Assembly: GCA_024704765.1 (NCBI GenBank)
Contig: JAKMXF010000034.1
Span: 1-64,000 of the forward strand
Direction of reading: 5' to 3'
Origin: Oopsacas minuta
Lineage: Eukaryota > Animalia > Porifera
Length of the DNA stretch: 64,000 nucleotides
This document shows positions 41,685 through 64,000 of this stretch, piece by piece; position 1 is the stretch's first letter, and each line of letters starts with the position of its first letter. Below the pieces are notes generated by a model that was not told where the DNA came from, did no database searches, and worked only from the letters and a program-made list of their open reading frames with translations. Made by a program: the position numbers and the translations under genes.

Positions 41685-42057
41685 CCTACATACTGATTAG
41701 GTACTAGTCATGGGGGTTTAAAGGTTAATACACAAATATGTCTTTCCTCCACAGTTGAAATTACTTGATATCCTAGTGATCTTATATTGAATTACACGTT
41801 AAGTTTAGGCAAAATCAAATAATAGCAAGCCATAAATAGACGGCTTCGTTAATAACATATCGTTAATTCAACGTTATTCCTCTTGCAAAAACACACAGGA
41901 AATTCTGAGAAAAATCGATTTTTTGGTGAGTTTACAGTTTACACCATAAATTCTATAATATTCATTATAGATAATTATTTGATAGATATTGATAAATAAG
42001 AAACATCATTTTAGGGTGAACCCAGTTTCTTTTTGGTGATTTTAATGATATATAATG
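41685..42057. repeat. ~370-bp repeat with an inverted copy at 63366-63735
   Basis: Shared long blocks such as AAAAAGAAACTGGGTTCACCCTAAAATGATGTTTCTTATTTATCAATATCTATCAAATAATT on opposite strands. Confidence 0.85.
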
Positions 42058-42624
42058 TACTTGTACGTATAAGGATATTAGATTATTTAAAAAATAGCAA
42101 GTGACACAATAGCACGTGTTGAATAGCGACGCCAGTGCTAAGTAGTCCGAAATAACTGCTCATATTTCCAACCAGTATGAAGAGAAAACCGGGAGGGAAT
42201 GCATTATATTAACGCGACATAGCATATTAACATTACGTAGTTTGTCTACTCAAAAGCGTGACAATTCAACTATTTAGCACGATTTAGCGGGACAAAACCC
42301 TAAGGCATGGCCCAGAATTAGGACGTCCCGCCATAGGAGGGACAGTTGGTAATTAGACCACGTTTTTAAATTTGAAAGATGGTTAAATAGTCTCAAGGGT
42401 GTGCAGAATTTCACCCAACAATCCTTTCTATATTTGTTACCTAGACATCCTAAATCAACAAAAAACTGTCAGCATATCGCAGTATTTCAAATTTTGTCGT
42501 GCTAGTTAGTATGATTGAAAGTTAACATCTCGTGAGATGTTGGGTACAAAAAGATGGTGTGAAGTTTAGTTATTATCTAATGGAATGACAGCATATTTGT
42601 CTGTATAAATTTTGAATTTTTCAG

Positions 42625-42940: not shown

Positions 42941-45900
42941 ATGTTTTCCTTAATATCACGACAACTTTCATATCTGGTACTCTTAGCCTTGCTCGTATGT
43001 TCGCTACATGCTGCCATAGAGCTTTCGTTCTTCAACGACATCCCTAATACTCCACAGGAAACCATCGTATTCGCATCTGATTCGTTGTTCTATACAGGGG
43101 GCCTAGCGCATATTGACGAATTTATCTGCACATCAGATAGTCCTAGTACAGAAACTGTATTGTGGTTTGATGCTAGAGGTAATGAGGTTAGTATAGGTGA
43201 TGGTAGTGGTACGAGTTTGTATTGGACGGGGACCACTAGTAACAAAACACTACACACATCTGATAGTTCCGGTAATAACTTGATTGATGTGGAAAATCAG
43301 GGGAATAACTTCACTTGTAGGGTTGATGAGACTAGTGAGGAGAAAGTATTGGGAATATATTGGGTAAGGTCAATACTTGACGCAGATGGTGAGGTAAACA
43401 ATCAACTAGAAGGAATGAGAATATATACCAAAGATGACCCTCCCAAGATCTCAGAATTTACACTTCAAAGAGGCTTCTTCGATTTGGATTTCTCTAAGCA
43501 ATACAAAGTACAGTCATTGATTGGATCTACTTCTATAACAATCTCTCCAGCCCCCATAGAACCTGCTATCATACCTCCTGAATCGATAATAGATAATGTA
43601 ACATTCTCAAATAGTAGATATTGTCACTTCATCGGTACAAGTTCAAACGACTTTCTATACACAACTCTATTCAATGGGGATTTCATCCCTAGCACTTCAC
43701 CTGTACTCAGTTTACCACAGTTCGGTGGAGCAACATGCATAGAAAACGGTAAACAAACTTCATCATTTCTAGGAGATATCATACCAAATCTAAGATTTAT
43801 TTGTCCTCTCGTGTTCAATGGTAACTTCATAAACATAGATAACCTTAATTTACTCACAGAAAATGAGATTGTAGCTAGTTCACCTCCAGAACTACCACAA
43901 ATCAATGGAAGGAGACTTTGGGTTGACTTTGTCAGCTCTATGAGTATAAGTCTGAGATACGATAGGGAATATGTGTGTGAAGACATGTACGGTACAAGAT
44001 TAAGTTTCAATTTACGAGTTAAGGGAAATTATCCTTTAGAAATACTAGTATCTGATCTAGCTAATGATGGTATACTTGTTGGAACTAACTATATCAATAC
44101 AGAGATCCCTGAAATACTCTACTGCTTAGCTGAAACAGATAACACACCTATTACATGGCTAAGTGAAACCACCGCAGATTATACTGCCTCTGTTTCCGCA
44201 TTAGAAGTTACTAATCGCACATCTATCATCCCTTACAGAATTACGCCTCGTGCAGGTAGAAGTGATATGTTCCTAAACTCAACAATAGCATTAGATAGGG
44301 AAGGTTATTACACGTGTAGTGATGGAGGTACAAATGATATCAGAGTGGGGATATTCTCACTTAACCCTGAAGCTCCAATTGCTTTGGTTACACCTTCTGA
44401 GTCATCCCAGAATATCAGCATTATCAATCCAATAAACATAACGTGTGGTGTAGTGAATAATTCAACTCATCCTCCTCCAATTTTCTTCTGGACAGGACCA
44501 CGCACTTCTTCCACCGGCCTCCTTGACACAACTGGATTCCAAGAGACAGATTCTGGTGATTACACTTGTCATTCCAGTAATGTAGTAGGAGGTAGTAATG
44601 TTACTATCAGTATCCTGATAGTAGTACCACCTCCCATGCTTGTTGCGACCACAGATATTCCTGAATATTACTTCAAAGATGACAAAATACAATTATTTTG
44701 TAACTTCAGTATTGCACCTAACCTTGAGTCCATCATAACTATTTCATGGTATATGGATTCTATACTCATCATGAATAACAGTAACGGATTCCACATTTCA
44801 GAAACTACTTTAGGAGAGCCATGGAATTATCAGAGTGTTTTGTGTTTGTCCAGTGCTATACCTTCTAATACTGGACAGTACACTTGCAGTGCAACTGTCG
44901 GTCGCAGTAATACTACCACATCTCCTCCGTTTAACATTGAAATAGAGGCAGCCTACTTGCCTGATGCTGCGGTGATACAATTCAATAGGATCGGCCCTAT
45001 TTCAGCACATATTAGTTGGACTGCCACTAACAGAACTAGACTAACTCCTGAGATATATGTTGTTTCGTATTGCCAGTTACCTGCATGTGACAGCTACATT
45101 GAATCTGCACCATTATCTGCAACCTATTTCTTTATAAGCGAGATAATTGTTGAAACTAACTACTCAGTTCGTGTTGATGCTACTAATCGCTATGGGTCTG
45201 TTGTGGGTGCATCGCGAAATTTCACAACCTTGTTTGACAGGACCCTGTACTTTTATGATGTGAATAGAGAGGCTCCTTCTACGACATCCAATAAAACATA
45301 CTTCGCTAGTGGATCGGTATTCAGAGGAGGTGATATTGATTATATCTTGTTCCTAGTCCAGGATTTCTACTGTGTACCACAGAATCCAACGACTGATATC
45401 ATTACATGGTATGCACCTGATGGAGAGCTCGTAACACAGGGCTTTGTAGCTGACTCATTCTTTTACACAGTAGATGCAAATGGAGAGAGTACATTGTATT
45501 TGAATAATGCTCTGACAGCAAGCAATGATGGTAGGAACTTTACTTGTCGAATCAATTCGAATGGATTCCTATTTGATTACTACTTCGGTGTATACTTCAT
45601 ATTAGATGTATATACTACACGATCGTTTGGTGGGAATAGGTTATTCAGTAAAGATAATCCTCCTGTTGTGAGAGAGTTTGTAGCACAAAGAGGTAGCTTT
45701 GATATTGACCTCACCCAAACATATGACGTAGAATCTCTACAGTCTCCTTCATATCCCTCATTCGATTGGACATTTGTACCTAGTTTAGCATCACCTGTAA
45801 CAGTACCTGATATGAATATTCTTACCGATGCTCTGTTCAATGACACGAGTACTTGCCAATTAGGATATTCTTCAATTTCTGGCGATTTTTTCAGCTTTTC

Positions 45901-48900
45901 GGATAAACAATTTGTCATTCAAACTCCAGTTGGCAATTTTACAGACGGACCTCCTCTTATTGGATCTGCTTGTATTGAGGATAATACAATAGCTTATGTG
46001 TTTACGATTGGTTCAGGAGTTGACATTGCAGTAGTATGCCCATTGTTGTATGGCGCTAGTTTCCTTGATATTTCTCCTACTCAATTCATACAGTACGAAT
46101 ACATATTGAATGATTTTGGAAATAACTCAAGGAGATTGTTAGTTGACCCTGCACGAACAAGCGCTGTGATAGCACATGAGAGATCTTATGTTTGTCAAGA
46201 CAGATACGGAACTCGCTCTACGTTTGGAGCTAGGGTTGATGCCATTACTGAACTTCAAGTATTCGACAGTGACACTACCACAATACCAGTTTCTAACAAT
46301 GGAATGCACATAACAAATCAAATTACTCTCTATTGTCTGTCTAATAGCAATCTGTTAGAAATAGAATGGTATTTCAATACTAATCCAAATAGTTCTGAAG
46401 TAACATACACTCTGGTATCAAATGACAGCATGCTACAGCCATATGTCAGCAATCCTCGAGCCGGGAGAAGTGATTTGATTGTGTCAACAAAATTGCCTTC
46501 AAACAGACAGGGATATTTCTACTGCAGAGATTCAATGGATCGAATGTTAAACTACAGTATCTTTTCTCAGACGCCTGTTAGTCCGGTAGCAGTTATATCA
46601 CTAGATGTCGCCCAAATACAAGTTATCATAGGAATTGATCAACTATTGGTTTGTGGGTTCAGCAATTCACCACATCCTAACAATACTATCTCGTATTGGG
46701 AAGGTACCACTAGTGATTCTATGAATACTATTCTGCTATTAGAAATGAACTCACAAGTATTCACCTGTATAAGTTCTAATGTATTCGGACAGTCGACTGC
46801 TACTATAGAAATTACTGTAATTCCACCTGCTCCACAGGAAATCAGCTCATCTCTGACAACAGAAGGAGACATATTCATTACAGATACAGTTGAGATAGTT
46901 TGTGAATTCTCGACTTTACAAAATGTGACTTCATCAATCTTAATTCAATGGTACCACAATAACTCACTGAGCGTAGAAACAGGAATTACCACTGTTAATG
47001 GTCGTAGTACACTCATAGTCTCCGGTGCAAATGTTTCTCATTCTGGAGATTATCACTGTGTAGCTACAGTTGGAGGTAGTCTTCCTACTAACTCATCTCC
47101 CATACAAGTTACTGTCTATGATGCTTATGCTCCTGATGTTATTTCACTAACTCTGAGTTCTATCACAGTATTTACTGCAGTAGTTTCATGGAGTGGTACC
47201 ATTAGGGATCCCGAACTGCCAGAAACATACTCTATAGCATTTAGCAGAGTAGGAAGTAGTGAAAAGGTCATCCACACAGCACCCATGGGGTCTACTACAC
47301 TCAAAAAAAGTGAGCTTCTCCCTAACAGTGAATACGAAGTGCATCTCAATGCTACAAACCGATTCTTCACTACACAGGGATCTACTGCATTATTTAAGAC
47401 ATCAATTCTCAGATTGTACTTCATGAAAGGAAATGAAATAATACCAATTGGTGCAGGTTCTATTTTCAGAGGAGGAATCGGATCCCGTATATTTGACTAT
47501 GTAAGCGAGTATCATTGTTTTCCCGACAGTCCTGAACAAGTCATTACTTGGTATCAGCCAAATGGTGATGTTATTCCTCCTGGCAGCTCTTTTAACACAG
47601 GATTTTACCATATACGCAATAGCACCACTGGGAAGAGTGTGTTCTACCCGAATGATGCTGTGTCTTTTGAGAATGAGGGGAATAACTACACTTGTAGTTT
47701 TATGGGAAATTCTGGTGAGATTGTCAGGTCTCAATTTGGTATATACTACACGAAGGCTTTCTTTACTTTTACTGCCCGCGGTATGAGACTATATGGCCCA
47801 GAAGATCTGATTTATGAATTCGTTTGGCAGAGAGGAGTGTTTGATTTTAATTTTACACAAAATTACACCATTGAGTGCTTGAGAGATACATTGGCTCAAA
47901 AAGATCATTGGTTATTTGCACCATCTTCCAATACAAATACAGAGACATTAAACGTAACATTATATGATGTCCAATTTGATCCTACTGCAACATGCCAGTA
48001 TGCTAGGTGTGCTCCGTTTAGTCAATTCATTGCATTCTCAGACAAACCATTCTTTATTGAAACGACTATTCCTGTGGCTGAGGTTACAGTAGTTTTAAAA
48101 CGCTGTTTAGCAAACAATTACGAATTCAATTTCCAAATCGGAGACTCTATTGATATCCGTGTTACATGTCCATTGGTATTCGGCGCTCGTTTCCTAGACA
48201 TTGGTAGCGATATAACTTTGATACAAAATGAATACACTACAGACAACCCAAGGAGACTATATTTTGATCCTGTCACAATAGCTACACTGCAACAAGATAG
48301 AGAATTCGTATGTGAGGATATGTATGGTGTAAGAGCATCATTCAGGGTGATAGTCAATGGAGTTAATGACATACAGGTGTTTGCTAGTGCAAATTCTACC
48401 GTTCCTGAAACTAACGATACCAATCTTATAGGCGAATCCAACATCCCTGATTCTTTGTTCTGCATTACAGGAGACGCGAGTAACGCTGCTAACTGGTATG
48501 TAGATTCTAATCCTAATCGTAATACGGCAGAATCTGGAATAGCTGTGACAGCTGATTCAACACAACTGCCTTATGTTCTATCACCACGAACTGGTAGAAG
48601 TGATCTTGTTCTCAGCGGAACAATTAGAGATGAAGCTGAAGGGTATTATTCCTGCGTAACAAATCCACAAATTACCTTAGGCATATTCCTTGAACAACCT
48701 ATAGCTCCTGAAGCAGTAATCACAGGAAATGAAGAGTCCATAGAAGTCGTCATCGGCATCACTACACCAATACTAGTATGTGATAAAAATAACAGTCCAT
48801 ATCCTAATCCCATATATTTCTGGACAGGAAGTGTGAACTCATTCACATATATGCTGGATACTTCTCTTCTACTGGAATCAGACTCAGGAGTGTATACGTG

Positions 48901-51900
48901 TACTGCTTCCAATGTTGTAGGATTGTCTAGTGATACAGTGACAATTACTGTAATACCTCCTCCTCCTCAATTCGTTTCTATTCAACTAGTTGCACCACTA
49001 CCTGTATATGTCGGTGATCCATTCATACTTCAATGTCAATTCAGTACACTGGCTAATGTCACTTCACAGATTAACATTGATTGGTACAGAGATGGAACAT
49101 TATTAGCTAACAGTGGTGATGACAGTATTGTAACTACTAATGCAGGAAGTGAAACTACTAGTGAATTGACAGTTTCAAATTCTATGATCATTCTAGAAGA
49201 TTACCAATGTAGATCTACAGTAGGTGCTAGTCAACAAACAGATTCAGTTACTTATACATTTAACTTCACTCCACCTCCAACTCCTATGATAAGTGTCAAT
49301 CCAGTGGATCCACCGGATCTATATGTCACACAGACAATCAATATTACATGTCAAGTTACTACTCTAGCTAGATTTCAAAGCGGATTAAGGATTGTTTGGT
49401 ATCAGAATGGAAGTATGCTCAGTACAAATGGTAATGTTCAAATTTCAATAATTAACTTGGATGATACCACCACAGAGAGCACGTTATCATTTGGAGATCT
49501 TGTCCTTGTTAATACAGGAGCATATCGTTGTGTAGCACAAGTGTTAAGTGTTTTAAATTCAGAAGCAGTGTCTATTACAACCAATATTCAAGTTGTTCAA
49601 ATTCCTGCTCCTCAATTCGTTTCTATTCAACTAGTTACACCACTACCTGTATATTTCAGCGATCCATTCACACTTCAATGTCAATTCAGTACACTGGCTA
49701 TTGTCACTTCACAGATCGTCATCAATTGGTACAGAGATGGAACATTATTAACTAACAGTAGTGGAGACAGTATTGTAACTACAAATACAGGGAATGAAGC
49801 TATTAGTAAATTGACAGTTTCAAATTCTACGACCATTCAAGGAGATTATCAATGTAAATCTAAAGTAGGTGCTAGTCAACAAACGGTTTCAGATACTTAT
49901 ACATTTAACATCACTCCACCTCCAACTCCTATGATAAGTGTCAATCCAGTGGATCCGCCGGATCTTTATGTCACACAGACAATCAATATTACATGTCAGG
50001 TTACTACTCTAGCTGTATTTCGTAGCGGATTACGCATTGTTTGGTATTACAATGGGAGCATTCTTAATTCAAATGGCAGCGTTTCCATTTCAACCATGAA
50101 CTTGAATGATACTAACACAGAGAGCACGTTAACATTTGGAGATATTGTCCTTGGTAATACAGGAGCATATCGTTGTGTAGCACAAGTGTTAAGTGTTTTA
50201 AATTCAGAAGCAGTGTCTAATACAACCAATATTTCAGTTGTTCAAATTCCTGCTCCTCAATTCTATTCAATTCAGTTGGTAACAACACCGCCTATCTATG
50301 TCAATGATATATTCACTCTTCAATGTCAATTCAGTACTGTACATAATATTAAACCACAGATCGTCATCAATTGGTACAGAGATGGAACATTATTAGCTAA
50401 CAGTGGTGATGACAGTATTGTAACTACTAATACAGAGAATGAAGCTACTAGTGAATTGACAGTTTCAAACTCTATGAATATTCAAGAAGATTACCAATGT
50501 AGATCTACAGTAGGTGCTAGTCAACAAACAGATTCAGTTACTTATACATTTAACTTCACTTCACCTCCAACTCCTATGATAAGTGTCAATCCAGTGGATC
50601 CACCGGATCTATATGTCACACAGACAATCAATATTACATGTCAAGTTACTACTCTAGCTAGATTTCAAAGCGGATTAAGGATTGTTTGGTATCAGGATGG
50701 AAGTATGCTCAGTACAAATGGTAATGTTCAAATTTCAATAATTAACTTGGATGATACCACCACAGAGAGTACATTAACATTTGAAGATCTTGTCCTTGGC
50801 AATACAGGAGCATATCATTGTGTAGCACAAGTGTTAAGTGTTTTGAATTCAGAAGAAGGAATGTCAAGTACAACCAATATTTCGGTTGTTCAAATTCCTG
50901 CTCCTCAATTCTATTCAATTCAGTTGGTAACAACACCGCCTATCTATGTCAATGATATATTCACTCTTCAATGTCAATTCAGTACTGTACATAATATTAA
51001 ACCACAGATCGTCATCAATTGGTACAGAGATGGAACATTATTAGCTAACAGTGGTGATGACAGTATTGTAACTACTAATACAGAGAATGAAGCTACTAGT
51101 GAATTGACAGTTTCAAACTCTATAAATATTCAAGAAGATTACCAATGTAGATCTACAGTAGGTGCTAGTCAACAAACAGTTTCAGTTACTTATACATTTA
51201 ACTTCACTCCACCTCCAACTCCTATGATAAGTGTCAATCCAGTGGATCCACCGGATCTATATGTCACACAAACTATCAACATTACATGTCAGGTTACTAC
51301 TCTAGCTGTATTTCATAGCGGATTAAGCATTGTTTGGTATTTCAATGGAAGCATTCTTAATTCAAATGGCAGCGTTTCCATTTTTACCATGAACTTGAAT
51401 ATTACTAGCACAGAGAGTACGTTAATGTTGGCAGATCTTGTACTTTCTAATACAGGAGCATATCATTGTGTAGCACAAGTGTTAGGCGTTTTGAATTCAG
51501 AAGAAGGAGTGTCAAGCACAACTAATGTTCAAGTTAATTTGCCTCCAGCTGCTGTCTTCAATTCGATTAGCTCTCTTACAGAAGACACTATTTTAATTGG
51601 AGAGGAGCTTATATTAGTTTGTGAGTTCACAATTCTATCTCAGTTTCTTCAATATCTCTCTATAAATTGGTATCATAGCAATACTCTACTGACTGCTAGT
51701 AGTAATGTTCTAATGGAAGAATCGGTTTTAGGTTCTGATATGTTGCAAAGTATCCTTACGATCACGAATACAGCTATATCTAATTCTGGGATGTACTCCT
51801 GTAAAGCAACACTATTGAATTATATCACCACTACTTCTTCATTACTGTCTATTGAGATTGTTGCTGTACCTACTCCGATGTTTGTTAGCATATATGCTTC

Positions 51901-53885
51901 CTCACAAGATCCTGTCTATATTTCAGATTCTTTCTCTCTTTCTTGTGAATTCATAATATCATCCATGTTCATTTCTTCTCTCTCGATTATTTGGTTTCAT
52001 AACGATACCACGATTACATCTTTCTCTAATATTATGATTACTTCAAGCAAAAATGCTGATAATGCAGTTAGTACTTTGAGTGTGTCTAATGCAGGTCTGG
52101 ACAAATCGGGTAGTTACTCCTGTGGAGCAAGTATACCAGAATCAATTATTCAATATTCTACTCTTCTCCAAGTTAATGTTTTGCCAATACCTGCTCCAGA
52201 ATACGTTTCAATCGGATTGAGTAAGAAGCCTGTTTACATTAACGCATCCTTCCAGCTTTATTGTACATTCAATGCATTAACTCGTATCTTACCCTATATT
52301 ACAATCAACTGGTATCATAATTCAACTGAAGTAACTTCATGTCACTCCAGATTTTTGATTAACATCAACCATGATAATGTTAGAATCCTGAACAGTACTT
52401 TATCCGTACAATCTTCTGAAGAATGTCAAGCAGGAGCATATCATTGCGATGCGAACTTTGATCAACTGAATTCTGTTTCTGAAAACTTCCAACTTTCATT
52501 TAATCCAGGTAAGTCTATATTTTGTGTACGACTGAACCATGCGTAATAGCTAATACGAGTTGTGTGAATGATAATACAGAGCGAAAAGGGACTCAGTTGA
52601 ATTTTGAAAATGTGAGTACACTTAGCTGAAATCACATTATTAACCTATTTAGCATAACGAATTTTTCGGGTACTTATCATGAATTTGCTATGATGTGCAC
52701 TATTTACCATACTAGAATACACTCTTATGTACATGAAAAGTTGCTATTAGACGAATTGCAAATATGCAAACAATACTACATATATAACGTACGTGTATAC
52801 AATACTCATAGCCGGTAGAACCGGTTGGACAGGTTAGGTGATTGCTAGACTACTTTTTCTGGAATATGCATTGAATCAATGATATATAGGGACCACTTTT
52901 AAGAGATTGTACATTTTCATTTTGATTACGTCGTGCCTCTTATAACTTACAAGTTAGCTCGTTGGTGTATAGCTTAGAGAGACTATTCGTGTAATCATTA
53001 TACATTAACTAAAATTCGAATAAATCCCGTAATTTATTATATAGATCCGTATGAACAAGAGATAACATCCCTAAATGTATCCTCCAATAATGACAAGTTG
53101 TATCTCCAATGGACAATATCCAAACAACCTATTGCTGACGAATATTTCAGGATTAAGATAATCATGCAGGCAGCAGATGGTTCATTAAAGGTAACGGAAA
53201 CTATTTTACCTTGTGACGTAACATGTCAAGGAAGCAAGGATGTCATTTATGAGCTGACAGACATTGTCATTAATTCGCTATACTTGGCAGAAGTAACGGT
53301 TATTAATTTATACGGACAACAATCAAGAATATATATATTTGATCCTCAAGCTATCTTAACAGATGTATCTGGTACTTCTCAATGTCCTGATGTTAATATA
53401 AGTATCGTAGTCCCACTGATTATAATCATTATGATATTGATATCTGTAATTATGGCCATTTTCATTATTTTCATAATTTGGTATGTAAAGTTTAAGAAAA
53501 TTGTTCCAAAAAGCCAGTGCAAACCTATGCAATCTGACAAAGATTATATTGGAATGTCCTCAAAGGAATCCGCATCTCATGGATATTATAATTTGGGACC
53601 TAATAGAGCTACTGAAGGAGAATCACAGTTCCACGCGGAGAGAACAATTATTGAAACTAATCTAGAGCCGACCTATGCGCATATCGATGAAGATGGTAAG
53701 GTATTTGAGATAGAAGGTAAGCTGATTGGAGAAGAGAAGAGAGATGGAGATTATGAGATAATGAAGTGTGGAGATGATCCACAAAGTGTAACATACTCGA
53801 ATGTAAGTTATTTTGTTATTATTTGATATATTATATTTTTGTTTAGCATACTTTTGAATTTGATTTTTTCCTTTAGCTCTCCTAA
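42941..53885 (+). CDS. Giant type I Ig/FN3 superfamily receptor, ~3,444 aa
   Basis: Exons 42941-52508 (CCAG|GTAAGT, phase 1), 53045-53802 (AAT|GTAAGT) and probably 53877-53885. Signal peptide, many C-x-W-x-Y-x-C Ig domains, FN3 domains, a TM helix (IVVPLIIII...FIIW) and a Tyr-motif tail. Confidence 0.88.
48955..51545 (+). repeat. Four tandem Ig-pair (A+B) units of 645-648 nt inside the giant exon
   Basis: PQF(V/Y)SIQLV and PTPMISVNPVDPPDLYVTQTINITCQVTTLA recur four times. Unit anchors are at 49606, 50251 and 50899. Confidence 0.92.
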
Positions 53886-54004
53886 CTACTATCCTCTGGT
53901 CTATCAGGATATTTTCGTATTATTTATTGAATCAATAGTTTGTGAATATTTGTTTCTTGAAGTTATAATTGTATATATATTTTATTGATGTCTACTCACA
54001 GTCA
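52681..54004 (+). repeat. 1.33-kb inverted duplication; partner at 57627-58955
   Basis: The partial intron, TM/tail exon, last intron and 3' end are reverse complements at roughly 97% identity in the exon. Confidence 0.95.
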
Positions 54005-57000
54005 ACATTCGTAAATTCGAACTTTCACAAATTCTAATTCTTACGAATGAATATGTTCAAACCAGCTAAATAGACATACATTGGATCTGTCCAGCCTGGA
54101 GCAGGAGTCTGGTTTTGAGTAACAACAGTACATTAAATTCCACACAACTTGGATGGTCAATGACATAAACATCTATATTCCTGAGTTAACGCTAGTATAG
54201 CACTGAACGATTTGAGCCTTAGATTCTTTGTACGTTTTTCGAATTCTGCCGATAAAGTGCTCGGAGGTTCTATTTGAGTTTAAGCCTGTTTAGACAGTAT
54301 GGGCCATCGAAGGTGATCTTGTCGCATGACCATGCATTTATCGTATTTACGAAGAAAGTAATCAGAATTCAACAAAACTCGACTAAATATTTCGAATGTT
54401 CTGAATCTGATTTTTAATTACATTTCACTTCATTTGTGCCAATAGAAATTTATGAATAATTTGATATCTGAACGGATTGCATTCTAGGAACAAAATTACA
54501 CCGGTACCGAGAGGCTATAGCTCCCTCAAACAGTAATGGTTAGCACCGCCTCAGCTATTTATTAAGCGGAGAGTCTAAATAAATATTGCACAAAACCAAG
54601 CTGTACTATGCCAGTAATAATTATTTTACTGCAAAAGTTTAATAACCTTTCGTATCTCTATGAATCGCACTATTTGTGAAACTTATTAATTGACTGGTAT
54701 GTCCTACCGAGCATATTATGTGCGATATACGTCCTCTGAGATATGTAAGGTTGTGATCAAAATATTGTACCGTATCTCAGAGACTCTCTTTTCAGACCCA
54801 TTACAGGACTATGATTTTTAGGCGATAAATTAAATCATTCGCATTTATACGAGCATACGAATTTCGTGATAACAGGTTGCTCTAGGATAGAGGAGGAAGA
54901 GAATTTTCTTATTCGAAAATAACAAGTTAGTCAAGCCCTGCCAACTTAAAGAATACGTGTATGATTATGCGCAAGATTAACAATCATAAATTTGCAGGCA
55001 TTAAAAGACTGACATGCCAACTATCCAGTTTTTGGCTGGAAATCCAATCTTTCCTGACTTTTAAGCCAAATTTTATGTCTAGCATAAATGTGGAAAGAAT
55101 ATTGAATAGTCCGGCTTTTAGTTGACAATATAAATTGCCAAGTCGCGCCACAAAACAATACCCAGCTGATTTCTTCCCCCTGTAGGTAAGTATTGAACAT
55201 AATATATAGGTTACTTTTAATATCTAATAAACACATACTACTTGTATTACTATACTATTCAAATTATATAAACACACTCAAACACTCAATGAATCACAGT
55301 TATTGTCTACAGCTTGATTTGAATAACAACACTATTTTCTGCGTGAGCTGGATTAAACACTACTTCAGTTGTCATCTCGATAGGAGTATTAGCATTTTTG
55401 CCCGATCCAAACAAATTACATTTTCTCTTTGGTTTGGGTTGGTCAAGAGAAATTCCTTCCTCAATCATATTTCATCTCCATTAGGGTGGATATATTCGGC
55501 GAAGCTAGTGAAACAATATTATTGGCACACTTTCACTTCGCTTGATTCTACAACTGTGGTGAGACTATCAGTTACCCAGTAATTCTCATTCAAATACCTG
55601 CAAGTATAAGTGAAACCTTCAGAACTCGAAACTACATCAAATCCAATGTAACCTATAATCAGGGGTATATTGTAGGGGAAGGGGGGAGCGGCGCTCCCCG
55701 AAGACAATTTCTAGGGGGAACGCGCTCCTCCACTACAAATTCAAGGAGGAGAGGCGCTCCCTCAATTTAACTTGATTATTGTTATTTTATAATAATAAAG
55801 GTAGATTAAGTTTCGGAGTTGTCCTTCTTTCGTAATCTAGTCAACTCCCCTTAATAGGGTAACATTGGTTCCAGGCCATTCCAACCAATTAAGCGGATTA
55901 AACGTGTTTGCCGGTCTAAGGAATTATGTAACATCGCACTGCACTGTTTTGGCCAAGTGATCCTATCAACAGTGTGGCAATTTAGCATATTCTGGACCAT
56001 CATGCATCATAACAACGGTGCAATTGGGCTTTGCCATACTGTCTCTCAGAAATTAATGGCCCCTACACCTACAGTCATGTGAAATTCCATAAAAGATTAT
56101 TTCATTATCTTTCAACTTACTCAGGGATGTTGTTTTGACAAAAATAGTCCCCCTCACTTTTGAGGATTTCTATAATATTTCTCAACGTTTATATGACTTC
56201 AAAGTTCAAACTATTGTAATAATGGATAAGTAATCAAATAACTATTTGTACATAAACTGGTTATGGCCTCGGACAGGGCAATGCATCATTAATCCTGATT
56301 ATTAAGCAAAATATGAGGGATTAAAATCTTCTTTTCGCATGCGATTTTGTACAGTTAGTAGAACCTCCAAGATCCGCACCTCTTTGTATGCAGAAAGTAA
56401 GAAAATAATATTTTCTTTAGAAAATATACGAGATTTGTTGTTAAGATACGGGCACCTTCCTCAACAGGGCATAGTTTACCACGATTTTGATATTAGCAAA
56501 ATCTCATTTACCATTTACCTAGACTGAATGCAAATCTTAATACCGCACTCGATATTAGTCATGATTCTTGTTGGATATAGTGAGGGTTCGGATTAGCGAG
56601 GTGGTAATTCTCCATTGGATTAGTGTTATTTCACTAATCCGAACGAATATTAAGTAATCACTAATGGGGGGACCAATTTGCAGGGGAGACCATTTTTGTC
56701 AAAACAAAGGTAATTTACATGTAGATTCAATATTGCAGAAATGGTGCATTTTTGCCCGAATAAATGTATTGCATATTTGTAGAAAAGTATATTGTCAACC
56801 ATTTTGCCTATGCTAAAATTCAGGAATGTGTGAAAATATGTGTCTAGTTAGTATTTATTTGTTACAATATTCCATTCTTAGATTACTTATAGTATGGGAA
56901 GTAATGCATCTTTCATTTCAAAGTTAACATATGAAATGATCTCTAGATACTTTTTGCAAAATATCAAAATTATCATGATAAAGTTGCCTCGAGCTTGAAA

Positions 57001-57744
57001 TACCATGGATGACACATTTTATGAATATCCAATTAGAATTCGATAATCGTTAAGATTATTGCCAAATCAGTATAGCAATGAATTGTATGTGCCAAACTTC
57101 CCATATCTTTGTAATACATTTTGATGTGATATCTCTGAATATTATTGCGTAATGTTTGATGGCCAAATATGGGCAAATTCACGTTGACTTCAAATTGATA
57201 ATAGTTATTACATCAAAATGTATAATAAGGATATGGCAAGCCTGATCATACTATAAATTGGCTATACTGATTTGGCAATATGGTTCAAAATTGAGGGCCG
57301 TGCACTGGGTCACTGGGCCAAGAGGTCGTGACTCATGACCCAGGACCCATGGTCCTCTCTGATTCAAATATATTTGGTAGCTCTAAACTGCATGAACGTA
57401 TCGTAAGATGATAGTTTCTTGTATTTGCTGATATTAGTTTTACATACCCAGCATTACAGATCACACAACTTCCGTCAGTAGATCAATACAAGGTACATTA
57501 TATATAATGGATATAGTGATAACACTGTAACGGGGACACATATTTGAGCCAAAATATGCGTCCTCCACATCCCACCCGGCCACCCTAGATTCGGTACTGG
57601 GGCCTACTAACCCCTAAAGATGGCACTGACTGTAAGTAGACATCAATAAAATATATATACAATTATAACTTCAAGAAACAAATATTCACAAACTATTGAT
57701 TCAATAAATAATACGAAATATCCTGATAGACCAGAGGATAGTAG

Positions 57745-60700
57745 TTAGGAGAGCTAAAGGAAAAAATCAAATTCAAAAGTATGCTAAACAAAAATATAAA
57801 ATATCAAATAATAACCAAATAACTTACATTCGAGTATGTTACACTTTGTGGATCATCTTCACAGTTCATTATCTCATAATCTCCATCTCTATTCTCTTCT
57901 CCAATCAGCTTACCTTCTATCTCAAATACCTTACCATCTTCATCAATATGCGCATAGGTCGGCTCTAGATTAGTTTCAATAATTGTTCTCTCCGCGTGGA
58001 ACTGTGATTCTCCTTCAGTAGCTCTATTAGGTCCCAAATTATAATATCCATGAGATGTGGATTCCTTTGAAGACATTTCAATATAATCTTTGTCAGATTG
58101 CATAGGTTTGCACTGGCTTTTTGGAACAATTTTCTTAAACTTTACATACCAAATTATGAAAATAATGAAAATGGCCATAATTACAGATATCAATATTATA
58201 ATGATTATAATCAGTGGGACTACGATACTTATATTAACATCAGGACATTGAGAAGTACCAGATACATCTGTTAAGATAGCTTGAGGATCAAATATATATA
58301 TTCTTGATTGTTGTCCGTATAAATTAATAACCGTTACTTCTGCTAAGTATAGCGAATTAGTGACAATATCTGTCAGCTCATGAATGACATCCTTGCTTCT
58401 TTGACATGTTACCTCACAAGGTAAAATAGTTTCTGTTACCTTTACTGAACCATCTGCTGCCTGCATGGTTATCTTAATCTTGAAATATTCATCAGCAATA
58501 GGTTGTTTGGATATTGTCCATTGGAGATACAACTTGTCATTATTGGAGGATACATTTAGGGATGTTATCTCTTGTTCATACGGATCTATATAATAAATTA
58601 CGGGATTTATTCGAATTTTAGTTAATGTATAATGATTACACGAATAGTCTCTCTAAGCTATACACCAACGAGCTAACTTGTAAGTTATAAGAGGCACGAC
58701 GTAATCAAAATGAAAATGTACAATCTCTTAAAAGTGGTCCCTATATATATCATTGATTCAATGTATATTCCAGAAAAAGTAGTCTAGCAATCGGCTAACC
58801 TGTCCGACCGGTTCTACCGGCTATGAGTATTGTATACACGTACGTTATATACGTATGTAGTGTTGTTTGCATATTTGCAATTCGTCTAATAGCAACTTTT
58901 CATGGACATAAGAGTGTATTCTAGTATAGTAAATAGTGCACATCATAGCAAATTCGCGTATTAGCAACGAAAGTACGAAATATAACATACCGTAAGTGAA
59001 TTTCTATTAATGAAAATTCAATAAATAGAGAATACAACTTACCTGGAGGATATGTTGTATTAACAATTGGTTGTGATTTGATACTAGTTCCTTCTTGGGT
59101 GACTACATTTATACTGATTGAATATTCTGTATTTGGTAATAGGTTAGATATAATCTGTTCATACGGTCCTGAATCTCCATCAGCAAAGTATTGAATTTGT
59201 TGTTCTGTATCTCCAGGAATTTGGTAGAATATGTTAAAACTTTGTAAAGCTCCATTCAAAGTAGTGAAATCATTTTCAAATGAAACTAGTAGTGACATCT
59301 GAGGCGTTCCTATTGGTGCTGTTATTGGGATCACTGTAATAACGATGGGAGGACCGGTAGGAGCTAGAATAGAGAATATAATTATAATACTTGTATACTA
59401 TATTAGAATATACGTATAATAAATATGATACACAAATATCTTGATAAGTAGTTAAATTCATTCGTTTAGACTGAACCAAGTATTTTATGACAAACCATTT
59501 GCAGCTAGAGTTGGAGGTAAAATTGTAACGAAAGGTGTTCGCCCAAGAGCAGTCTGAATAGATACATTAACCTCGTACTCATAATTAGGGAGAAGATCAT
59601 CTAGAGTAATACTATTATCGTCTATAGGGAATGTCATAAAGAGTTCAGGAGTCATATCTATAATCACACGATCGGATTGTCTTCTTCTTCTCATATCAGT
59701 TGGAAATACGCTGTCTTCAAATAGGAATCCTTGGTAAAAACTGGTATATCCAGTAGCTGGGGAATTTAGTAATGATACTGGAACAAAAGGGATAATTAGA
59801 GTTATACTTGTTGAAGTGGTTTGATTCATTACATCATCAGGTGTAAATACTGGTACAGTAGGAGGAGAAACTAAAGAAAAGTTAACATAATGTAGTAGTA
59901 TAATAAATCCTGTATTTAATGATATTAAATGCATTGGAGTATAGCTCTGACCTTGGCTGAACAGAGGTCCGATTGTTTCAATGATCACCGTGTCAGTTCA
60001 TTTTAGCGCGAATCCAACTTTCCACCCATGTACCCCCTGTTGTCGTTCGTGGAACACAAATTGCACTCATGTTGGACACAGTATAGTTTAGCCTTTGCAC
60101 TAAACAACCAACCTGCTTCTGTCATGATATATCTGGTCTGACTCGAAGCACCTAAGCCAGCTCCATTTCTAACTCTTACACTAACTACATACATCGTTCC
60201 TTCGTCTACATTATCGAAACATACCATAATGATAGTAGATTGGACACTATAGCAACTAGCATCATTTATATTACATGTTCTGTTACTGGGACCTGATATT
60301 TGAATACTCGATAAGTTTACAAAATATCTGTCAATTAAACCATTTTGATCAATTGCTGGTGGGTTGGTAAATCGTACACATATTTGTGTAGGATTATTAC
60401 TTGATACAGTAAGAATATTTGGAGCAGCAGACACTAAAAGAATAAGAAAACACAATCAATTCTATGTATGTAAGTTTGTTTACTGTTTTGAATATGAAAT
60501 AATGCATCCTTAGCATGCCAATGTCACATTTACTGACAAAGCCCTGTCATTGTGGCGTAAGATTTGAAAGGACCTGAGTATGAGTAGTCTTAACATATTC
60601 AACAAACCTGCTTCATTAGTTAACTGCACTACTCCATTTGTGTATTCACTTGTTCCTGCTACATTAATAGCTCTAACACTAATAGTATAATTATTATACT

Positions 60701-63362
60701 CTTGTAATCCAGTCAGATCAACAGAAATTTGTGTTTCAGCTGGATAGTTTGAATTTGGTGCATTTACCATTACAAACTGAGGATTAGTATCAAATATCTC
60801 TCCTGTATAGCTGATATTATACATGAGATCACGTCCATTCTGATCTATTGCAGGAGGAGGATTAAATGTTACTCTAATAGATGTAGCACTCAATGCTACC
60901 GTCATTACGTTTTGAGGTGTTTCACTGGGAGCTATTAGGAATATAAACAAATAATAGATAAATTTTTGCAAAACTCTGTTTTCCAAGGGAAAAAGAATAT
61001 ATTATTGAAATTGAGGATGATTCAGAGAACCATCTCTTATACGTGTATAGTCAGTAAATTTTACAGTGTATTATCACTATCCTGCACTCTTTTACATACA
61101 AGATTATTTCTTATACAAAGCAAAAGGACATTATTAGCAAATTGATTCACATCTCACCTGCGATATCTGTCAACTGTACTACGTCATCAGTGTATTCACT
61201 TGTTCCTGCTACATTAATAGCTCTAACACTAATAGTATAATTGTTATATTCTTGTAATCCAGTTAGATTAACAGAAATTTGTGTATCAGCTGGATAGTTT
61301 GAATTTGGTGCATTTACCATTACAAACTGAGTATTAGTATCAAATATCTCTCCTGTATAGCTGATATTATACATCAGATCAGGTCCATTCTGATCTATTG
61401 CAGGAGGAGGATCAAATGTTACTCTAATAGAATTAGCACTCAATGTTTCTGTCATTACGTTTTGTGGTGTTTCACTGGGAGCTATGAAGAATACAATTAT
61501 AATTATATAGTTTAAAATATGTAGCTCAATGTGTATGTATAACTATTGAATTAGTTTATTGATTATACTGAATTAGATCAATTAATCTCACCTGCTTCAT
61601 TAGTTAACTGCACTACTCCATTAGTGTATTCACTTGTTCCTGCTACATTAATAGCTCTAACACTAATAGTATAATTGTTATATTCTTGTAATCCAGTTAG
61701 ATCAATAGAAATTTGTGTATCAGCTGGATAGTTTGAATTTGGTGCATTTACCATTACAAACTGAGGATCAGTATCAAATATCTCTCCTGTATAGCTGATA
61801 TTATACATGAGATCAGGTCCATTCTGATCTATTCCAGGAGGAGGATCAAATGTTACTCTAATAGATGTAGCACTCAATGCTACTGTCATTACGTTTTGAG
61901 GTGTTTCACTGGGAGCTATTAGGAATATAAACAAATAATAGATAAAATTTTGCAAAACTTTGTTTTCAAAGGGAAAAAGAATATATTATTGAAATTAAGA
62001 GCGATTCAGAGAACCATCTCTTATACGAATATAGTCAGTAAATTTTACAGTGCATTATCACTATTAATTATTTCTTATACAAAAAAAGGACATTATTAGC
62101 AAATTGATTCACATCTCACCTGCGATATCTGTCAACTGTACTACTCCATCTGTGTATTCACTTGTTCCTTCTACATTAATAGCTCTAACACTAATAGTAT
62201 AATTGTTATATTCTTGTAATCCAGTTAGATTAACAGAAATTTGTGTATCAGCTGGATAGTTTGAATTTGGTGCATTTACCATTACAAACTGAGTATTATT
62301 ATCAAATATCTCTCCTGTATAGCTGATATTATACATCAGATCAGGTCCATTCTGATCTATTGCAGGAGGAGGATCAAATGTTACTCTAATAGAATTAGCA
62401 CTCAATGTTTCTGTCATTACGTTTTGAGGTGTTTCACTGGGAGCTATTAGGAATATAAACAAATAATAGATAAAATTTTGCAAAACTCTGTTTTCAAAGG
62501 GAAAAAGAATATATTATTGAAATTGAGGATGATTCAGAGAACCATCTCTTATACGTATATAGTCAGTAAATTTTACAGTGTATTATTACTACCCTGTACT
62601 CTTTACAAACAAGATTATTTCTTATACAAAGCAAAAGGACACTATTAGCAAACTGATTCACATCTCACCTGCGATATCTGTCAACTGCACTACTCCATCT
62701 GTATATTCACTTGTTCCTTCTAAATTAAAAGCTCTAACACTAATAGTATAATTGTTATATTCTTGTAATCCAGTTAGATTAACAGAAATTTGTGTATCAG
62801 CTGGATAGTTTGAATTTGGTGCATTTACCATTACAAACTGAGTATTATTATCAAATATCTCTCCTGTATAGCTGATATTATACATCAGATCAGGTCCATT
62901 CTGATCTATTGCAGGAGGAGGATCAAATGTTACTCTAATAGAATTAGCACTCAATGTTTCTGTCATTACGTTTTGTGGTGTTTCACTGGGAGCTATGAAG
63001 AATACAATTATAATTATATAGTTTAAAATATGTAGCTCAATGTGTATGTATAACTATTGAATTAGTTTATTGATTATACTGAATTAGATCAATTAATCTC
63101 ACCTGCGATATTAGTCAACTGCACTACTCCATTAGTGTATTCACTTGTTCCTGCTACATTAATAGCTCTAACACTAATAGTATAATTGTTATATTCTTGT
63201 AATCCAGTTAGATTAACAGAAATTTGTGTATCAGCTGGATAGTTTGAATTTGGTGCATTTACCATTACAAACTGAGTATTAGTATCAAATATCTCTCCTG
63301 TATAGCTGATATTATACATCAGATCAGGTCCATTCTGATCTATTGCAGGAGGAGGATCAAAT
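57745..63362 (-). CDS. FN3-repeat type I receptor, 5' end missing (broken at the N at 63363); shares its TM/tail exon with the giant Ig gene
   Basis: Minus-strand exons: 63103-63362 (partial), 62669-62992, 62120-62443, 61592-61915, 61158-61481, 60608-60931, 60113-60433, 59496-59870, 59043-59363, 57828-58585 and probably 57745-57753. The FN3 exons are phase 1-1 with GT-AG ends. Confidence 0.86.
60608..63362 (-). repeat. Tandem array of six near-identical 324-nt FN3 exons with two recurring intron types
   Basis: APSETPQNVMT...DLMYNISYTGEIFD...LTGLQEYNNYTISVRAIN...EYT repeats. Introns are 226/204/225 nt (type X) and 110/110 nt (type Y). Confidence 0.93.
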
Positions 63363-64000
63363 NACGTTATATATCATAAAATCATCAAAAAGAAACTGGG
63401 TTCACCCTAAAATGATGTTTCTTATTTATCAATATCTATCAAATAATTATCTATAATGAATATTATAGAATTTATGGTGTAAACTGTAAACTCACCAAAA
63501 AAATCGATTTTTCTCAGAATTTTCTGTGTGTTTTTGCAATAGGAATAACGTTGAATTAACGATGTTATTAACGAAGCCGTCTATTTATGGCTTGCTGTTA
63601 TTTGATTTTGCCTAATCTCAACTTGTAATTCAATATAAGATCACTAGGATATCAAGTAATTCCAACTATGGAGGAAAGACATATTTGTGTATTAACCTTT
63701 AAACCCCATGATTAGTACCTAATCAGTATGTAGGAGTTAAGAAATAGTTACATTTAGTTGACTCCTACCAACTTATGAGATTGCAGATTCTATCTATACT
63801 CCAATTGGTACTAAGTACTTAGCTGGTGTTGTTCTATATTTATGCACAGCTGCACAAACTTTCTAACAAGGGCCCATGCAGTATTGAGAAGGAGTTCAAA
63901 CATATCTTTTGCATTAGCTCTATAGCGCTGTAACCAAGCCAGCCAGGGGACTTAAGCCACCCGCGAGTTCGGTGCCTATGTTGATGCGAGATTCTACTAC

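Follow-up and report, generated by a model that had tools for sequence, protein, structure and literature searches.

The 64,000-nt stretch of Oopsacas minuta contig JAKMXF010000034.1 analyzed here (the window) carries an Ig-rich gene on the plus strand (gene A) and, converging on it, an FN3-array gene on the minus strand (gene B), and the locus as a whole is best explained by a young chimeric origin of gene B. On this account, which we regard as probably correct, a tail native to gene A was joined to an FN3 array by microhomology and was later partly homogenized with its source. The result would be an exon-shuffling event in a glass sponge young enough that both source genes and the join remain visible. 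Exon shuffling had been proposed in an earlier note made from the sequence alone, and the event can indeed be traced, with both parental sequences still present in the O. minuta genome.

Architecture of the convergent locus

The features on which the argument draws are as follows:
41683..42058; +; left arm (X) of an outer inverted repeat, in the Ig gene 5' flank, about 0.9 kb upstream of the ATG
42941..52508; +; Ig-rich ectodomain, a single large exon (ORF list, Pfam, P0001 model)
52509..53044; +; last long intron of the Ig gene (sequence read directly)
roughly 52643-52790; MITE-like repeat in the Ig gene's intron, with about 10 other genome copies at about 80%
52681..54004; +; inverted-repeat arm A (repeat search, arm alignment)
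53045..53802; +; tail exon A, with FN3-fold stalk, TM helix and Tyr-motif cytoplasmic tail (frame, splice sites, P0001)
53877..53885; +; terminal mini-exon (Leu-Ser-stop) after a 74-nt intron, per the annotated model (P0001, sequence)
54005..55658; no strand; spacer part 1, the native downstream flank of tail A (similarity to C195)
55713..57280; no strand; spacer part 2, three multi-copy repeats, transposon remnants (genome copies)
57627..58955; -; inverted-repeat arm B (repeat search, arm alignment)
57828..58585; -; tail exon B, open frame, 95% amino acid identity to A (P0026 residues 953-1204)
58956..58975; -; chimeric junction zone (four-way alignment)
59043..63362; -; FN3 exon array, nine exons, all phase 1-1 and open (ORFs, Pfam, P0026)
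63363; no strand; single N, a scaffold joint or uncalled base at the FN3 exon cut (the only N in the 69-kb contig)
63364..63736; -; right arm (X') of the outer inverted repeat, a copy of the Ig 5' flank directly upstream of the cut FN3 exon

The ectodomain exon of gene A corresponds to residues 1-3189 of P0001 ('Titin isoform X20 [Oopsacas minuta]', 3444 aa) and opens with a signal peptide, after which come three super-repeats, each about 720 aa long, and an Ig array, with Pfam matches to Ig_3, I-set, Ig_2 and fn3. Since it comprises 3189 codons plus one base, it ends in phase 1; the CCAG|GTAAGT donor claimed for it, and the identical phase-1 donor claimed for the last FN3 exon of gene B (59363-59043, minus strand), were both read directly in the sequence. 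The FN3 array corresponds to P0026 residues 1-952, with Pfam fn3 matches in the minus-strand exons and a furin-like RRRRQS site in the penultimate one. Both ectodomains have undergone the recent repeat expansion that had been suggested for them, as the repeat search recovered 645-nt units in the Ig exon and, in the FN3 array, a three-exon unit of about 1512 nt.

At its 5' end, gene B is truncated: its first FN3 exon is cut mid-exon at the N, neither the assembled sequence nor the annotated P0026 shows a signal peptide, and P0026 begins at an internal Met. The X' arm adjoins both the N and the cut exon and is oriented relative to the FN3 exon as X is to the Ig gene; X (377 nt) matches 63364-63736 in reverse complement at 95.8% identity, and the two are the sole copies in the genome. 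Gene B also lacks E1 and E2, both present before the tail in the FN3 genes of relatives. With neither a signal peptide nor an intact first exon, the gene as assembled is more plausibly a fragment, or a gene of very recent origin, than a second functional sensor. Sequence missing from the assembly could nevertheless contain its true 5' end along with a signal peptide.

Each tail exon is preceded by an AG (starts at 53045, plus strand, and 58585, minus strand), from which the phase-1 frame remains open. Tail exon A ends in AAT|GTAAGT and encodes P0001 residues 3190-3442. The NCBI models (3444 and 1206 aa; BRAKER/Augustus predictions) use exactly the two junctions by which the earlier note had connected unrelated ectodomains to near-identical tails. 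The terminal mini-exon falls within the repeat and is therefore present in arm B as well (57753-57745), and P0001 and P0026 share the C-terminus ...TYSNLS. An AlphaFold2 model of the tail comprises a beta sandwich (1-100), a helix (116-151) and an otherwise disordered remainder; its best Foldseek matches are FnIII domains, and the TM and cytoplasmic part has no Pfam match.

Across the alignment of the tail family, Y210, Y236, E237, M239 and N252 are invariant, and SH2-domain proteins probably dock at the two invariant Tyr motifs, T-Y-A-x-I/V and Y-E-x-M, when these are phosphorylated. The tail has no ITAM as defined by Yxx[I/L]x(6-9)Yxx[L/I] (PMC9546547): its sole YxxI (TYAHI) is followed 22 residues on by YEIM, which ends in Met. 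One ITIM candidate ([I/L/V/S]xYxx[I/V/L]), VTYSN+L at the extreme C-terminus, depends on the annotated mini-exon (read-through gives V), and its Tyr is missing in P0030, P0031 and one relative's Ig-type tail. Neither tail has a Pfam match to the PTP catalytic domain (PF00102), and comparison with phosphatase-type homologues gave no significant match outside the TM segment.

As had been proposed, the arms themselves are inverted copies; they match at 97-98%. Four collinear pieces cover 52681-54004 and 57627-58955 at 96-99% complementarity in a repeat search of the window, and their alignment contains 29 substitutions and three small indels over 1324 nt; just beyond both arm ends, similarity falls to chance level (38-50%). 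Homology starts mid-intron, again as claimed, with the arm A start at 52681 lying inside intron 52509-53044 and inside the MITE-like repeat, the 5' part of which is weakly detectable upstream (68/2000 shuffles). The arms are separated by 3622 nt (about 3.6 kb), of which 54005..55658 is 84-92% similar to C195 8060-9331, where it follows a third tail copy, and 55713..57280 consists of repeats with dozens of genomic copies at 72-95% identity. The flank downstream of arm B (57281-57626) has no second copy in the genome. Contig C195, which carries the third tail copy, terminates inside the tail exon, near a 146-nt stretch identical between the arms. The outer inverted repeat, the N, the C195 tail copy and an FN3-array copy on contig C103 were all invisible to the reader who made that note.

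The tail family in related sponges

Genes combining an Ig exon with a tail exon are present in five ENA assemblies of related sponges. The relatives' ORFs of about 2445 aa stop at the same exon end, and behind each lies a homologous ORF of 254-290 aa; the exon end is conserved (...LSFNPG|gt in gene A; ...SF(E/D)(T/A/S)G in the relatives, reading on into the intron), and tail A is 45-50% identical to tails behind Ig exons on the same strand in four assemblies. Because this architecture is conserved, the tail is evidently native to the Ig gene and not new wiring for it. Gene A would be an ordinary member of a receptor family that our searches recovered from O. minuta and the five related-sponge assemblies alone, in which one huge Ig-rich exon is spliced in phase 1 to an exon encoding stalk, TM helix and disordered tail. 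A search with the tail returned ten matches among 1.84 billion representative proteins, all from O. minuta or from ENA assemblies holding orthologues, and we found no published work on this family.

Gene B has the tail and no Ig exon and is therefore not an Ig-plus-tail member by architecture; nor does it show the arrangement of the relatives' FN3 genes (L043, L044 and L046: FN3 exons, E1, E2, FN3-type tail), to which its membrane-proximal FN3 exons are 48-57% identical. In the relatives, FN3-array genes carry an older, diverged tail paralogue, so sharing of the tail module is ancient; in one assembly (ERZ25071281), Ig-type and FN3-type genes lie convergent on a single contig. The two tail types are 26-34% identical, and no FN3-type tail occurs anywhere in the O. 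minuta genome. Phylogenetic reconstruction placed the three O. minuta tails (A, B and the C195 copy) in one clade (99/99) among Ig-associated tails, with the FN3-associated tails P0030 and P0031 falling outside (100/100), and an AU test rejected a single clade of all FN3-linked tails (p = 0.0064). By its phylogenetic placement, the tail of gene B is Ig-type, and the O. minuta event appears as a recent re-shuffle within an ancient shared-tail family.

The junction and the origin of gene B

The FN3 parent is represented by contig C103, where positions 7429-10399 are 95.8% identical to 58959-61919 and the FN3 gene continues past the match into E1, E2, then GPS and 7tm_2. Upstream of the junction, the gene B intron matches this copy, and the match ends at 58959; downstream, it consists of internal sequence of the Ig intron's MITE-like repeat, whose 5' part is kept in A and missing in B. 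The switch lies 70-85 nt past the FN3 donor, within the intron, at a microhomology of about 8 nt, and the parents share no longer exact match. The shortness of this microhomology and small adjacent changes in B make the exact breakpoint uncertain, and the copy that directly gave rise to the FN3 array may be an unassembled one rather than C103. Gene B thus displays the marks of a young chimera, namely identifiable parents (a C103-type FN3 gene and gene A), an intron breakpoint and phase-1 exons on both sides.

Gene B would have arisen in the O. minuta lineage, when an approximately 4.3-kb fragment of an FN3-array gene, which starts partway through an exon and stops about 80 nt inside the intron that follows the last FN3 exon, became flanked by inverted copies of two Ig-locus pieces, the 5' flank (X') and the tail block. 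Because the join lies inside the MITE-like repeat at about 8 nt of microhomology, we infer a microhomology-mediated, template-switching or end-joining rearrangement rather than homologous recombination. Both introns being in phase 1, the FN3 exons read straight through to the copied tail. Gene conversion probably later homogenized the close inverted arms in part.

Conversion between the arms, raised in general terms before, is plausible in this partial form: the arms diverge by 2.2%, against 4.2% for X and X' (Fisher p = 0.04) and 4.2% for the FN3 array and C103 (p = 0.001), and their differences cluster, with 11 of them falling within 150 nt (permutation p = 0.009); an identical run of 271 nt is common to both. 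Our recount agrees exactly with the 13 nonsynonymous and six synonymous differences reported previously, here over 252 codons, as well as with the seven extracellular changes in the first 60 residues of the ORF then used (exon residues 35-75) and the retention of all Tyr motifs, every tyrosine being identical in both arms. The 13:6 ratio does not differ from neutral (binomial p = 0.26), so motifs kept at 2.5% divergence say little. The tail has an estimated dN/dS of 0.57 and the FN3 exons one of 0.77, values that at such low divergence cannot separate a working from a dead gene.

Competing readings and known receptor systems

There is a modest chance that the assembly misleads, with pieces of real paralogues or haplotypes misjoined so that the link between FN3 array and tail, or the convergent neighborhood, is false. 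The N sits exactly on the boundary between X' and the FN3 exon, the multi-copy repeats in the spacer could hide a misjoin affecting the convergent 3.6-kb arrangement, C195 stops within the tail exon near the 146-nt stretch, and the 271-nt identical run means that arm phasing could be swapped. The assembly, a hybrid built with SPAdes plus SSPACE (with Pilon and GapFiller; PMC10280926), has an N50 of 0.67 Mb, and the scatter of this locus over short contigs (C34, 69 kb; C103, 23 kb; C195, 10 kb) is a further warning of paralogue or haplotype confusion. However, B diverges from both parents throughout (2.2% and 4.2%) and is therefore a third, distinct sequence, and the sequences at the junction have at most 8 identical bases in common, far under any k used, so k-mer graph collapse cannot explain the join. 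Swapped arms would leave the pairing of ectodomain and tail unchanged, and both architectures occur in relatives, convergent on one contig.

We consider it unlikely that the pair constitutes two working receptors feeding one signaling output, in a locus for diversifying recognition or for allorecognition. In favor of this reading, the two tail ORFs are intact and have the same Tyr motifs, the predicted models join each ectodomain to its tail, both ectodomains show recent repeat expansion, and the family has expanded as tandem arrays in one relative. The design also recalls the clustered IgSF receptors of Hydractinia Alr, with their Fn3-like membrane-proximal fold, single TM helix and Tyr-motif tails shared or swapped among paralogues (PMC9546547). 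That likeness, of Ig domains, FN3-like stalk, one TM and a Tyr-motif tail, is one of general design, and the sponge ectodomain differs in being very large (3189 aa, one exon) and its tail in having no ITAM. Against a working pair stand the cut first exon of B, its missing signal peptide, E1 and E2, the neutral-like 13:6 ratio and the clustering of synonymous with nonsynonymous changes, which a conversion mosaic fits better than selection; glass sponges, moreover, are syncytial. What survives of the two-sensor proposal is the presence of unrelated ectodomains before near-identical tails, the sharing of the tail being ancient; the allorecognition claim gained no support from any test run. Demosponge aggregation factors, the known sponge self-recognition system, are large, repeat-rich, extracellular and proposed for recognition. 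The ectodomains here resemble them in size and repeat content, but Pfam finds no Calx-beta or other aggregation-factor domain in either gene, and these genes encode membrane receptors, not secreted proteoglycan complexes.

It is very unlikely that gene B is simply the direct orthologue of the relatives' FN3-plus-tail gene, with only its tail overwritten by conversion from the Ig gene and no new chimera formed. Orthologous membrane-proximal FN3 exons do precede a homologous tail exon with the same boundaries in the relatives, the two gene types are convergent in ERZ25071281, and inverted repeats with a 3.6-kb separation are well suited to conversion. Yet B lacks E1 and E2, which separate the last FN3 exon from the tail in relatives and are present in its 95.8% twin on C103; on the 5' side the identical block takes in about 280 nt of intron past the repeat, and on the 3' side 200 nt, while similarity outside it is at chance level; and tails 26-34% identical are too diverged for initiating homologous conversion. 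A fold-back or palindrome artefact, expected to give adjacent identical arms and identical flanks, was rejected given the 3622-nt spacer with unique sequence, the 2.2% arm divergence and the unrelated flanks.

The chimeric origin preferred here has parallels in young genes formed by segmental duplication or exon shuffling, such as Drosophila jingwei and the tail swaps of primate KIR/LILR clusters. Gene B shares with these its two parents, intron breakpoint, phase 1-1 exons, low divergence and a repeat at the breakpoint; unlike them, it is a predicted product, in a glass sponge, assembled in inverted orientation from three pieces (5' flank, FN3 fragment and tail).

The ectodomain of gene A is apparently related to those of receptor tyrosine phosphatases. 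It is collinear (55-56% over about 2340 residues) with relatives' proteins, some of which carry PTP domains and end, as LAR-like (type IIa) RPTPs do, in FN3/TM/PTP, and its Ig array is 74% identical to the O. minuta tyrosine phosphatase P0020. LAR-type phosphatases have a furin-like site in the membrane-proximal domain, a feature matched by RRRRQS in the FN3 array of gene B. Unlike RPTPs, A and B lack a phosphatase domain and have unrelated TM and cytoplasmic sequence, about 105 residues long and bearing Tyr motifs. The contig also carries, just upstream, a gene with two PTP domains.

More tentatively, and with considerable doubt, FN3-array copies (95-98%) may recently have been placed before three membrane or signaling modules through intron breakpoints, and this part of the O. 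minuta genome would then be an active exon-shuffling hotspot. Such a hotspot would amount to cut-and-paste creation of new receptor wirings, with at least some products expressed. The modules found behind near-identical FN3 arrays are the Tyr-motif tail of gene B, a TM segment with double phosphatase (C34, 64.9-69.3 kb) and the Ig/GPS/7TM part of an adhesion GPCR (C103).

Two gene models with near-identical tail exons

The window comprises the first 64 kb of the 69,256-nt contig C34, and the genome searched amounts to 61.46 Mb in 365 contigs. A repeat search of the window and a separate alignment upheld the coordinates proposed in the earlier note for a pair of inverted copies: 52681-54004 (arm A) and 57627-58955 (arm B) match in four collinear pieces at 96-99% identity, with 29 substitutions and three small indels between them, and beyond either end the similarity is at chance level. 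The arms carry the tail exons of an Ig gene (gene A) and an FN3 gene (gene B), and the elements on which the following analysis relies are these:

42941-52508, forward strand: single Ig-rich ectodomain exon of gene A
53045-53802, forward strand: tail exon A
53877-53885, forward strand: terminal mini-exon (Leu-Ser), after a 74-nt intron, in the gene A model P0001
57828-58585, reverse strand: tail exon B
59043-63362, reverse strand: nine-exon FN3 array of gene B
About 52643-52790 and 58860-58972: MITE-like element of about 150 nt with terminal inverted repeats, marking the tail-side breakpoint

Reading the sequence bore out the claim that both ectodomain exons end in CCAG/GTAAGT in phase 1. The Ig ORF at 42941-52508 (9.6 kb) runs for 3189 codons plus one base before this donor, and the final FN3 exon on the reverse strand has it at 59043; AG precedes the tail exons at 53045 and 58585, where the phase-1 frame is open in both. 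Pfam recovered Ig domains in gene A and fn3 in gene B, as had been read from the ectodomains by eye, and a recount of the codons differing between the two tail exons gave the same 13 nonsynonymous and 6 synonymous changes as the original hand count. Both proposed ectodomain-tail junctions are used by predicted database models, BRAKER/Augustus predictions that we took as spliced models, exons being otherwise searched singly. The best match to the large Ig ORF, P0001 (3444 aa, 'Titin isoform X20 [Oopsacas minuta]'), runs from the Ig exon through an Asp into the tail exon and on to Leu-Ser. P0026 (1206 aa) consists of nine FN3 exons, tail B and the same Leu-Ser end; its start is an internal Met (MYNISY...) within a cut FN3 exon, and it has no signal peptide.

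The tail module and its ectodomain partners in related sponges

In an AlphaFold2 model built from an 11-sequence alignment, residues 1-100 of the tail form a seven-strand beta sandwich (pLDDT 80-93), followed by a helix at 116-151 and a disordered final 100 residues; the top Foldseek matches of the model are fibronectin type III domains. All family members retain Y210 (T-Y-A-x-I/V), Y236-E237-x-M239 and the exon-terminal Asn, and Y180 (Y-Y-N) is nearly invariant. An ITAM was sought in the tail and is absent, and a single ITIM-like string at its extreme C-terminus hinges on the last splice and is not conserved. Judged from its motifs, the tail may be a docking site for SH2 proteins once phosphorylated, and with its two invariant tyrosine motifs it would be a candidate phosphotyrosine signalling tail, undescribed so far in glass sponges.

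Among 1.84 billion representative proteins searched in full with HMMER, only 10 contain the tail, and the searches made limit the module to O. minuta and five related-sponge ENA assemblies (ERZ25766962, ERZ25072730, ERZ25071281, ERZ25069837 and ERZ26869290). Weaker protein matches were rejected as relatives, being the TM segments of an EGF-repeat tyrosine kinase and a phosphatase, and a sub-threshold Pfam match to Stevor, likewise driven by the TM segment, is meaningless. The genome-wide search for further tail copies that the earlier note had called for, carried out on DNA and protein, returned only A, B and a partial third copy, C, on contig C195. We found no paper on this tail family in glass sponges, and the O. 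minuta genome paper does not mention it (PMC10280926).

Homologues of the Ig exon occur in the related-sponge assemblies at 43-56% identity. Next to one of them, a housekeeping gene shares 59% identity with its counterpart in O. minuta, and the assemblies therefore represent related but distinct species. The relatives' Ig ORFs (about 2445 aa) terminate at the same exon end as that of gene A; on a 2.1-Mb contig they are arranged head to tail, each with a 254-282 aa tail-exon ORF after it, and the same pairing of Ig exon and tail is present in ERZ25071281 and ERZ25072730. The tail is thus native to the Ig gene, and gene A is a conserved family member. Other homologues of the Ig exon, together with the O. 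minuta paralogue P0020, a tyrosine phosphatase, carry FN3, TM and phosphatase domains, with TM and cytoplasmic parts unrelated to the tail; the Ig ectodomain therefore belongs to a receptor phosphatase family.

Several features of these Ig genes were observed in passing. Three N-terminal super-repeats of about 720 aa occupy 42941-49300 (forward strand) and include a module without Pfam assignment, which is conserved in the receptor family, since it is collinear with the relatives' proteins, those of phosphatase type included. In O. minuta the Ig exon exceeds its homologues by about 740 aa (3189 vs about 2445 aa; 48900-52500, forward strand); the additional segment aligns to the Ig-pair repeats themselves and so represents a lineage-specific expansion. 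On a 27-kb stretch of ERZ25766962 (locus L041), Ig-plus-tail genes lie head-to-tail with a period of 12-17 kb and copies 87-99% identical; between them are KH-domain genes and a MULE transposase flanked by 31-nt tandem repeats.

The tail also has FN3 partners outside O. minuta. Three of the 10 proteins from the HMMER scan (P0030, P0031 and P0032), 33-38% identical to the tail, are immediately preceded by FN3 exon arrays in three assemblies; their tail exons begin at the same P-L/Y-E-Q-E-I position, and the preceding FN3 exons are orthologues of the membrane-proximal exons of gene B, at 48-57% identity. In ERZ25071281, an Ig-plus-tail and an FN3-plus-tail gene occur on one contig, convergent and 174 kb apart. 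As the relatives possess an older, FN3-linked tail paralogue, a homologous tail shared by two ectodomain architectures is an old trait of these sponges. Two sensors with one output, which the earlier note had taken as the product of this event, is accordingly an ancient principle and no O. minuta novelty, with genes joining an FN3 array to the tail already in the relatives. The tail of gene B has a different history: a tree of the tails places O. minuta A, B and C together in a single clade (99/99) among the Ig-linked sequences, with P0030 and P0031 outside (100/100), and a single group of all FN3-linked tails is rejected (AU p = 0.0064). No FN3-type tail or remnant was found near gene B or anywhere else in the O. 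minuta genome.

Gene B as a probable young chimera

The FN3 parent of gene B is represented on contig C103 (22.8 kb), which carries a 95.8% copy of the array at 58959-61919. The match ends about 80 nt past the last FN3 donor, and beyond it C103 continues with a short intron, two exons (E1 and E2), an Ig-like ORF, a GPS motif and a 7tm_2 domain. The relatives' FN3 genes have E1 and E2 ahead of the tail; gene B has neither. In a four-way alignment, B tracks C103 up to the junction and then enters the interior of the MITE-like repeat, with about 8 nt common to FN3 intron and repeat at the switch. This repeat has at least 10 further genome copies at about 80% identity (loci L004-L013). Its 5' part is weakly detectable in gene A and absent from B, so the tail block came from A, and the apparent arm boundary at 52681 reflects a small change that arose later in A, not the original breakpoint. 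The opposite polarity, with B as donor and A as recipient, had been considered from an extra 17-21 nt of repeat homology in B and was rejected on the same alignment. The penultimate FN3 exon (59488-59997, reverse strand) contains an RRRRQS string, a possible furin-type cleavage site, which is kept in the C103 copy.

Gene B is therefore a new, young chimera despite the ancient shared-tail trait, and it is probably incomplete. We suggest that a tail block of the Ig locus was joined behind an FN3 gene fragment by microhomology-mediated, non-homologous joining. The description of the locus as exon shuffling caught in the act is fair, and the event is better documented than could be known from the window alone, both parents and the intronic junction being visible. 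The roles of the partners need revision: the shuffling stands, but the Ig gene was not newly wired, as A is the conserved family member and B the young chimera.

On its 5' side, gene B is cut mid-exon at 63362, within its most upstream FN3 exon. The sole N of the contig follows at 63363, and next to it lies X' (63364-63736, 373 nt), an inverted, 95.8% identical copy of X (41683-42058, 377 nt), located about 0.9 kb upstream of the ATG of the Ig gene. X and X' are the only two copies in the genome and bracket the whole locus. Since X' copies the 5' flank of the Ig gene, the order of the locus is X, Ig exon, tail, spacer, second tail, FN3 fragment, X'. The simplest account would be one complex inverted duplication or template-switching event in which two pieces of the Ig locus were copied around an FN3 fragment. 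Directly left of X, an 85-nt sequence (41600-41684) has at least 33 other genome copies, most of them 88-97% identical, and probably represents one end of a transposon or SINE.

Assembly error is a live rival at the N joint and in the spacer. The assembly was produced with SPAdes, SSPACE, Pilon and GapFiller (PMC10280926). Both contigs meeting at the N at 63363 stop at the very position where the homology to FN3 starts, which would fit a true abutment; SSPACE inserts a single n between contigs that are expected to adjoin but show no overlap. At the FN3-to-tail junction an error is much less likely: the longest exact word common to the parental sequences at the join is 8 nt, and as they share none longer, a k-mer graph could not have invented it.

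Shuffling of phase 1-1 exons that encode Ig and FN3 domains is the textbook account of the origin of animal receptors and, to our knowledge, has nearly always been deduced from ancient end products. In this early-branching animal, a tail module has been shared by two unrelated ectodomain architectures since before the species split, and a fresh event can be read that attached the tail to the end of part of another receptor gene, with both parents, the intronic junction, the repeat element and the microhomology still visible together. The locus would offer a concrete case of how such rearrangements arise, through microhomology-mediated, non-homologous joining, and of how they look at birth, often incomplete. 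The proposal of an allorecognition system has no evidence behind it.

Divergence of the copies and duplications around the locus

The arms diverge by 2.2%, against 4.2% for X vs X' (Fisher p = 0.04) and 4.2% for the FN3 array vs C103 (Fisher p = 0.001). Differences between the arms are clustered, with 11 of 29 within 150 nt (permutation p = 0.009) and one 271-nt run free of them (p = 0.04), and the 150-nt cluster holds synonymous and nonsynonymous changes alike. Such a mosaic agrees better with partial homogenisation between inverted repeats lying close together than with selection on the stalk. Values of dN/dS are 0.57 for the tail and 0.77 for the FN3 exons vs C103, and the 13:6 ratio of nonsynonymous to synonymous changes does not differ from the neutral expectation (p = 0.26); being without power at such divergence, dN/dS was dropped as a sign of function. 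Intact frames and retained tyrosines carry no weight at this divergence either.

Copy C lies at the end of C195 (9980 nt; locus L015), which stops within tail exon C (9332-9980 region); it matches A and B at 94% identity and no longer has the tyrosine of the D-Y-I-x-M motif. The 1.3 kb after copy C matches the spacer beside tail A, which identifies 54005-55658 as the native downstream flank of the tail. At 57627, arm B gives way to unique sequence; three multi-copy repeats make up the central part of the spacer. A second copy of the Ig exon 3' end, a possible partner of copy C, was not found in the assembled genome. Following copy C on the same strand, C195 1-8060 encodes coiled-coil ORFs, a cadherin-like ORF and an FN3 exon array 92-95% similar to C103 13.9-18.1 kb; the predicted model P0029 joins tail C to the coiled-coil ORF.

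Near-identical ectodomain pieces precede different membrane modules on C103 and C34. At C103 2931-10399 (L054-L056), the FN3 array with E1 and E2 stands ahead of the Ig-like ORF, GPS and 7tm_2 (adhesion-GPCR-like). On C34, upstream of gene B on the same strand and outside the window (64925-69256, L014), a TM exon and two phosphatase domains belonging to another gene come after a sequence 97.6% identical to E2 and the intron downstream of it; here too the homology breaks off within an intron, about 190 nt past E2. The window also contains NHL-repeat-like ORFs at 18878-19723, 33390-34214 and 39438-40666; part of the last (39687-40629) recurs in inverted orientation, at 89.6% identity, at the end of C103 (21304-22247), a further sign of segmental duplication around the locus.
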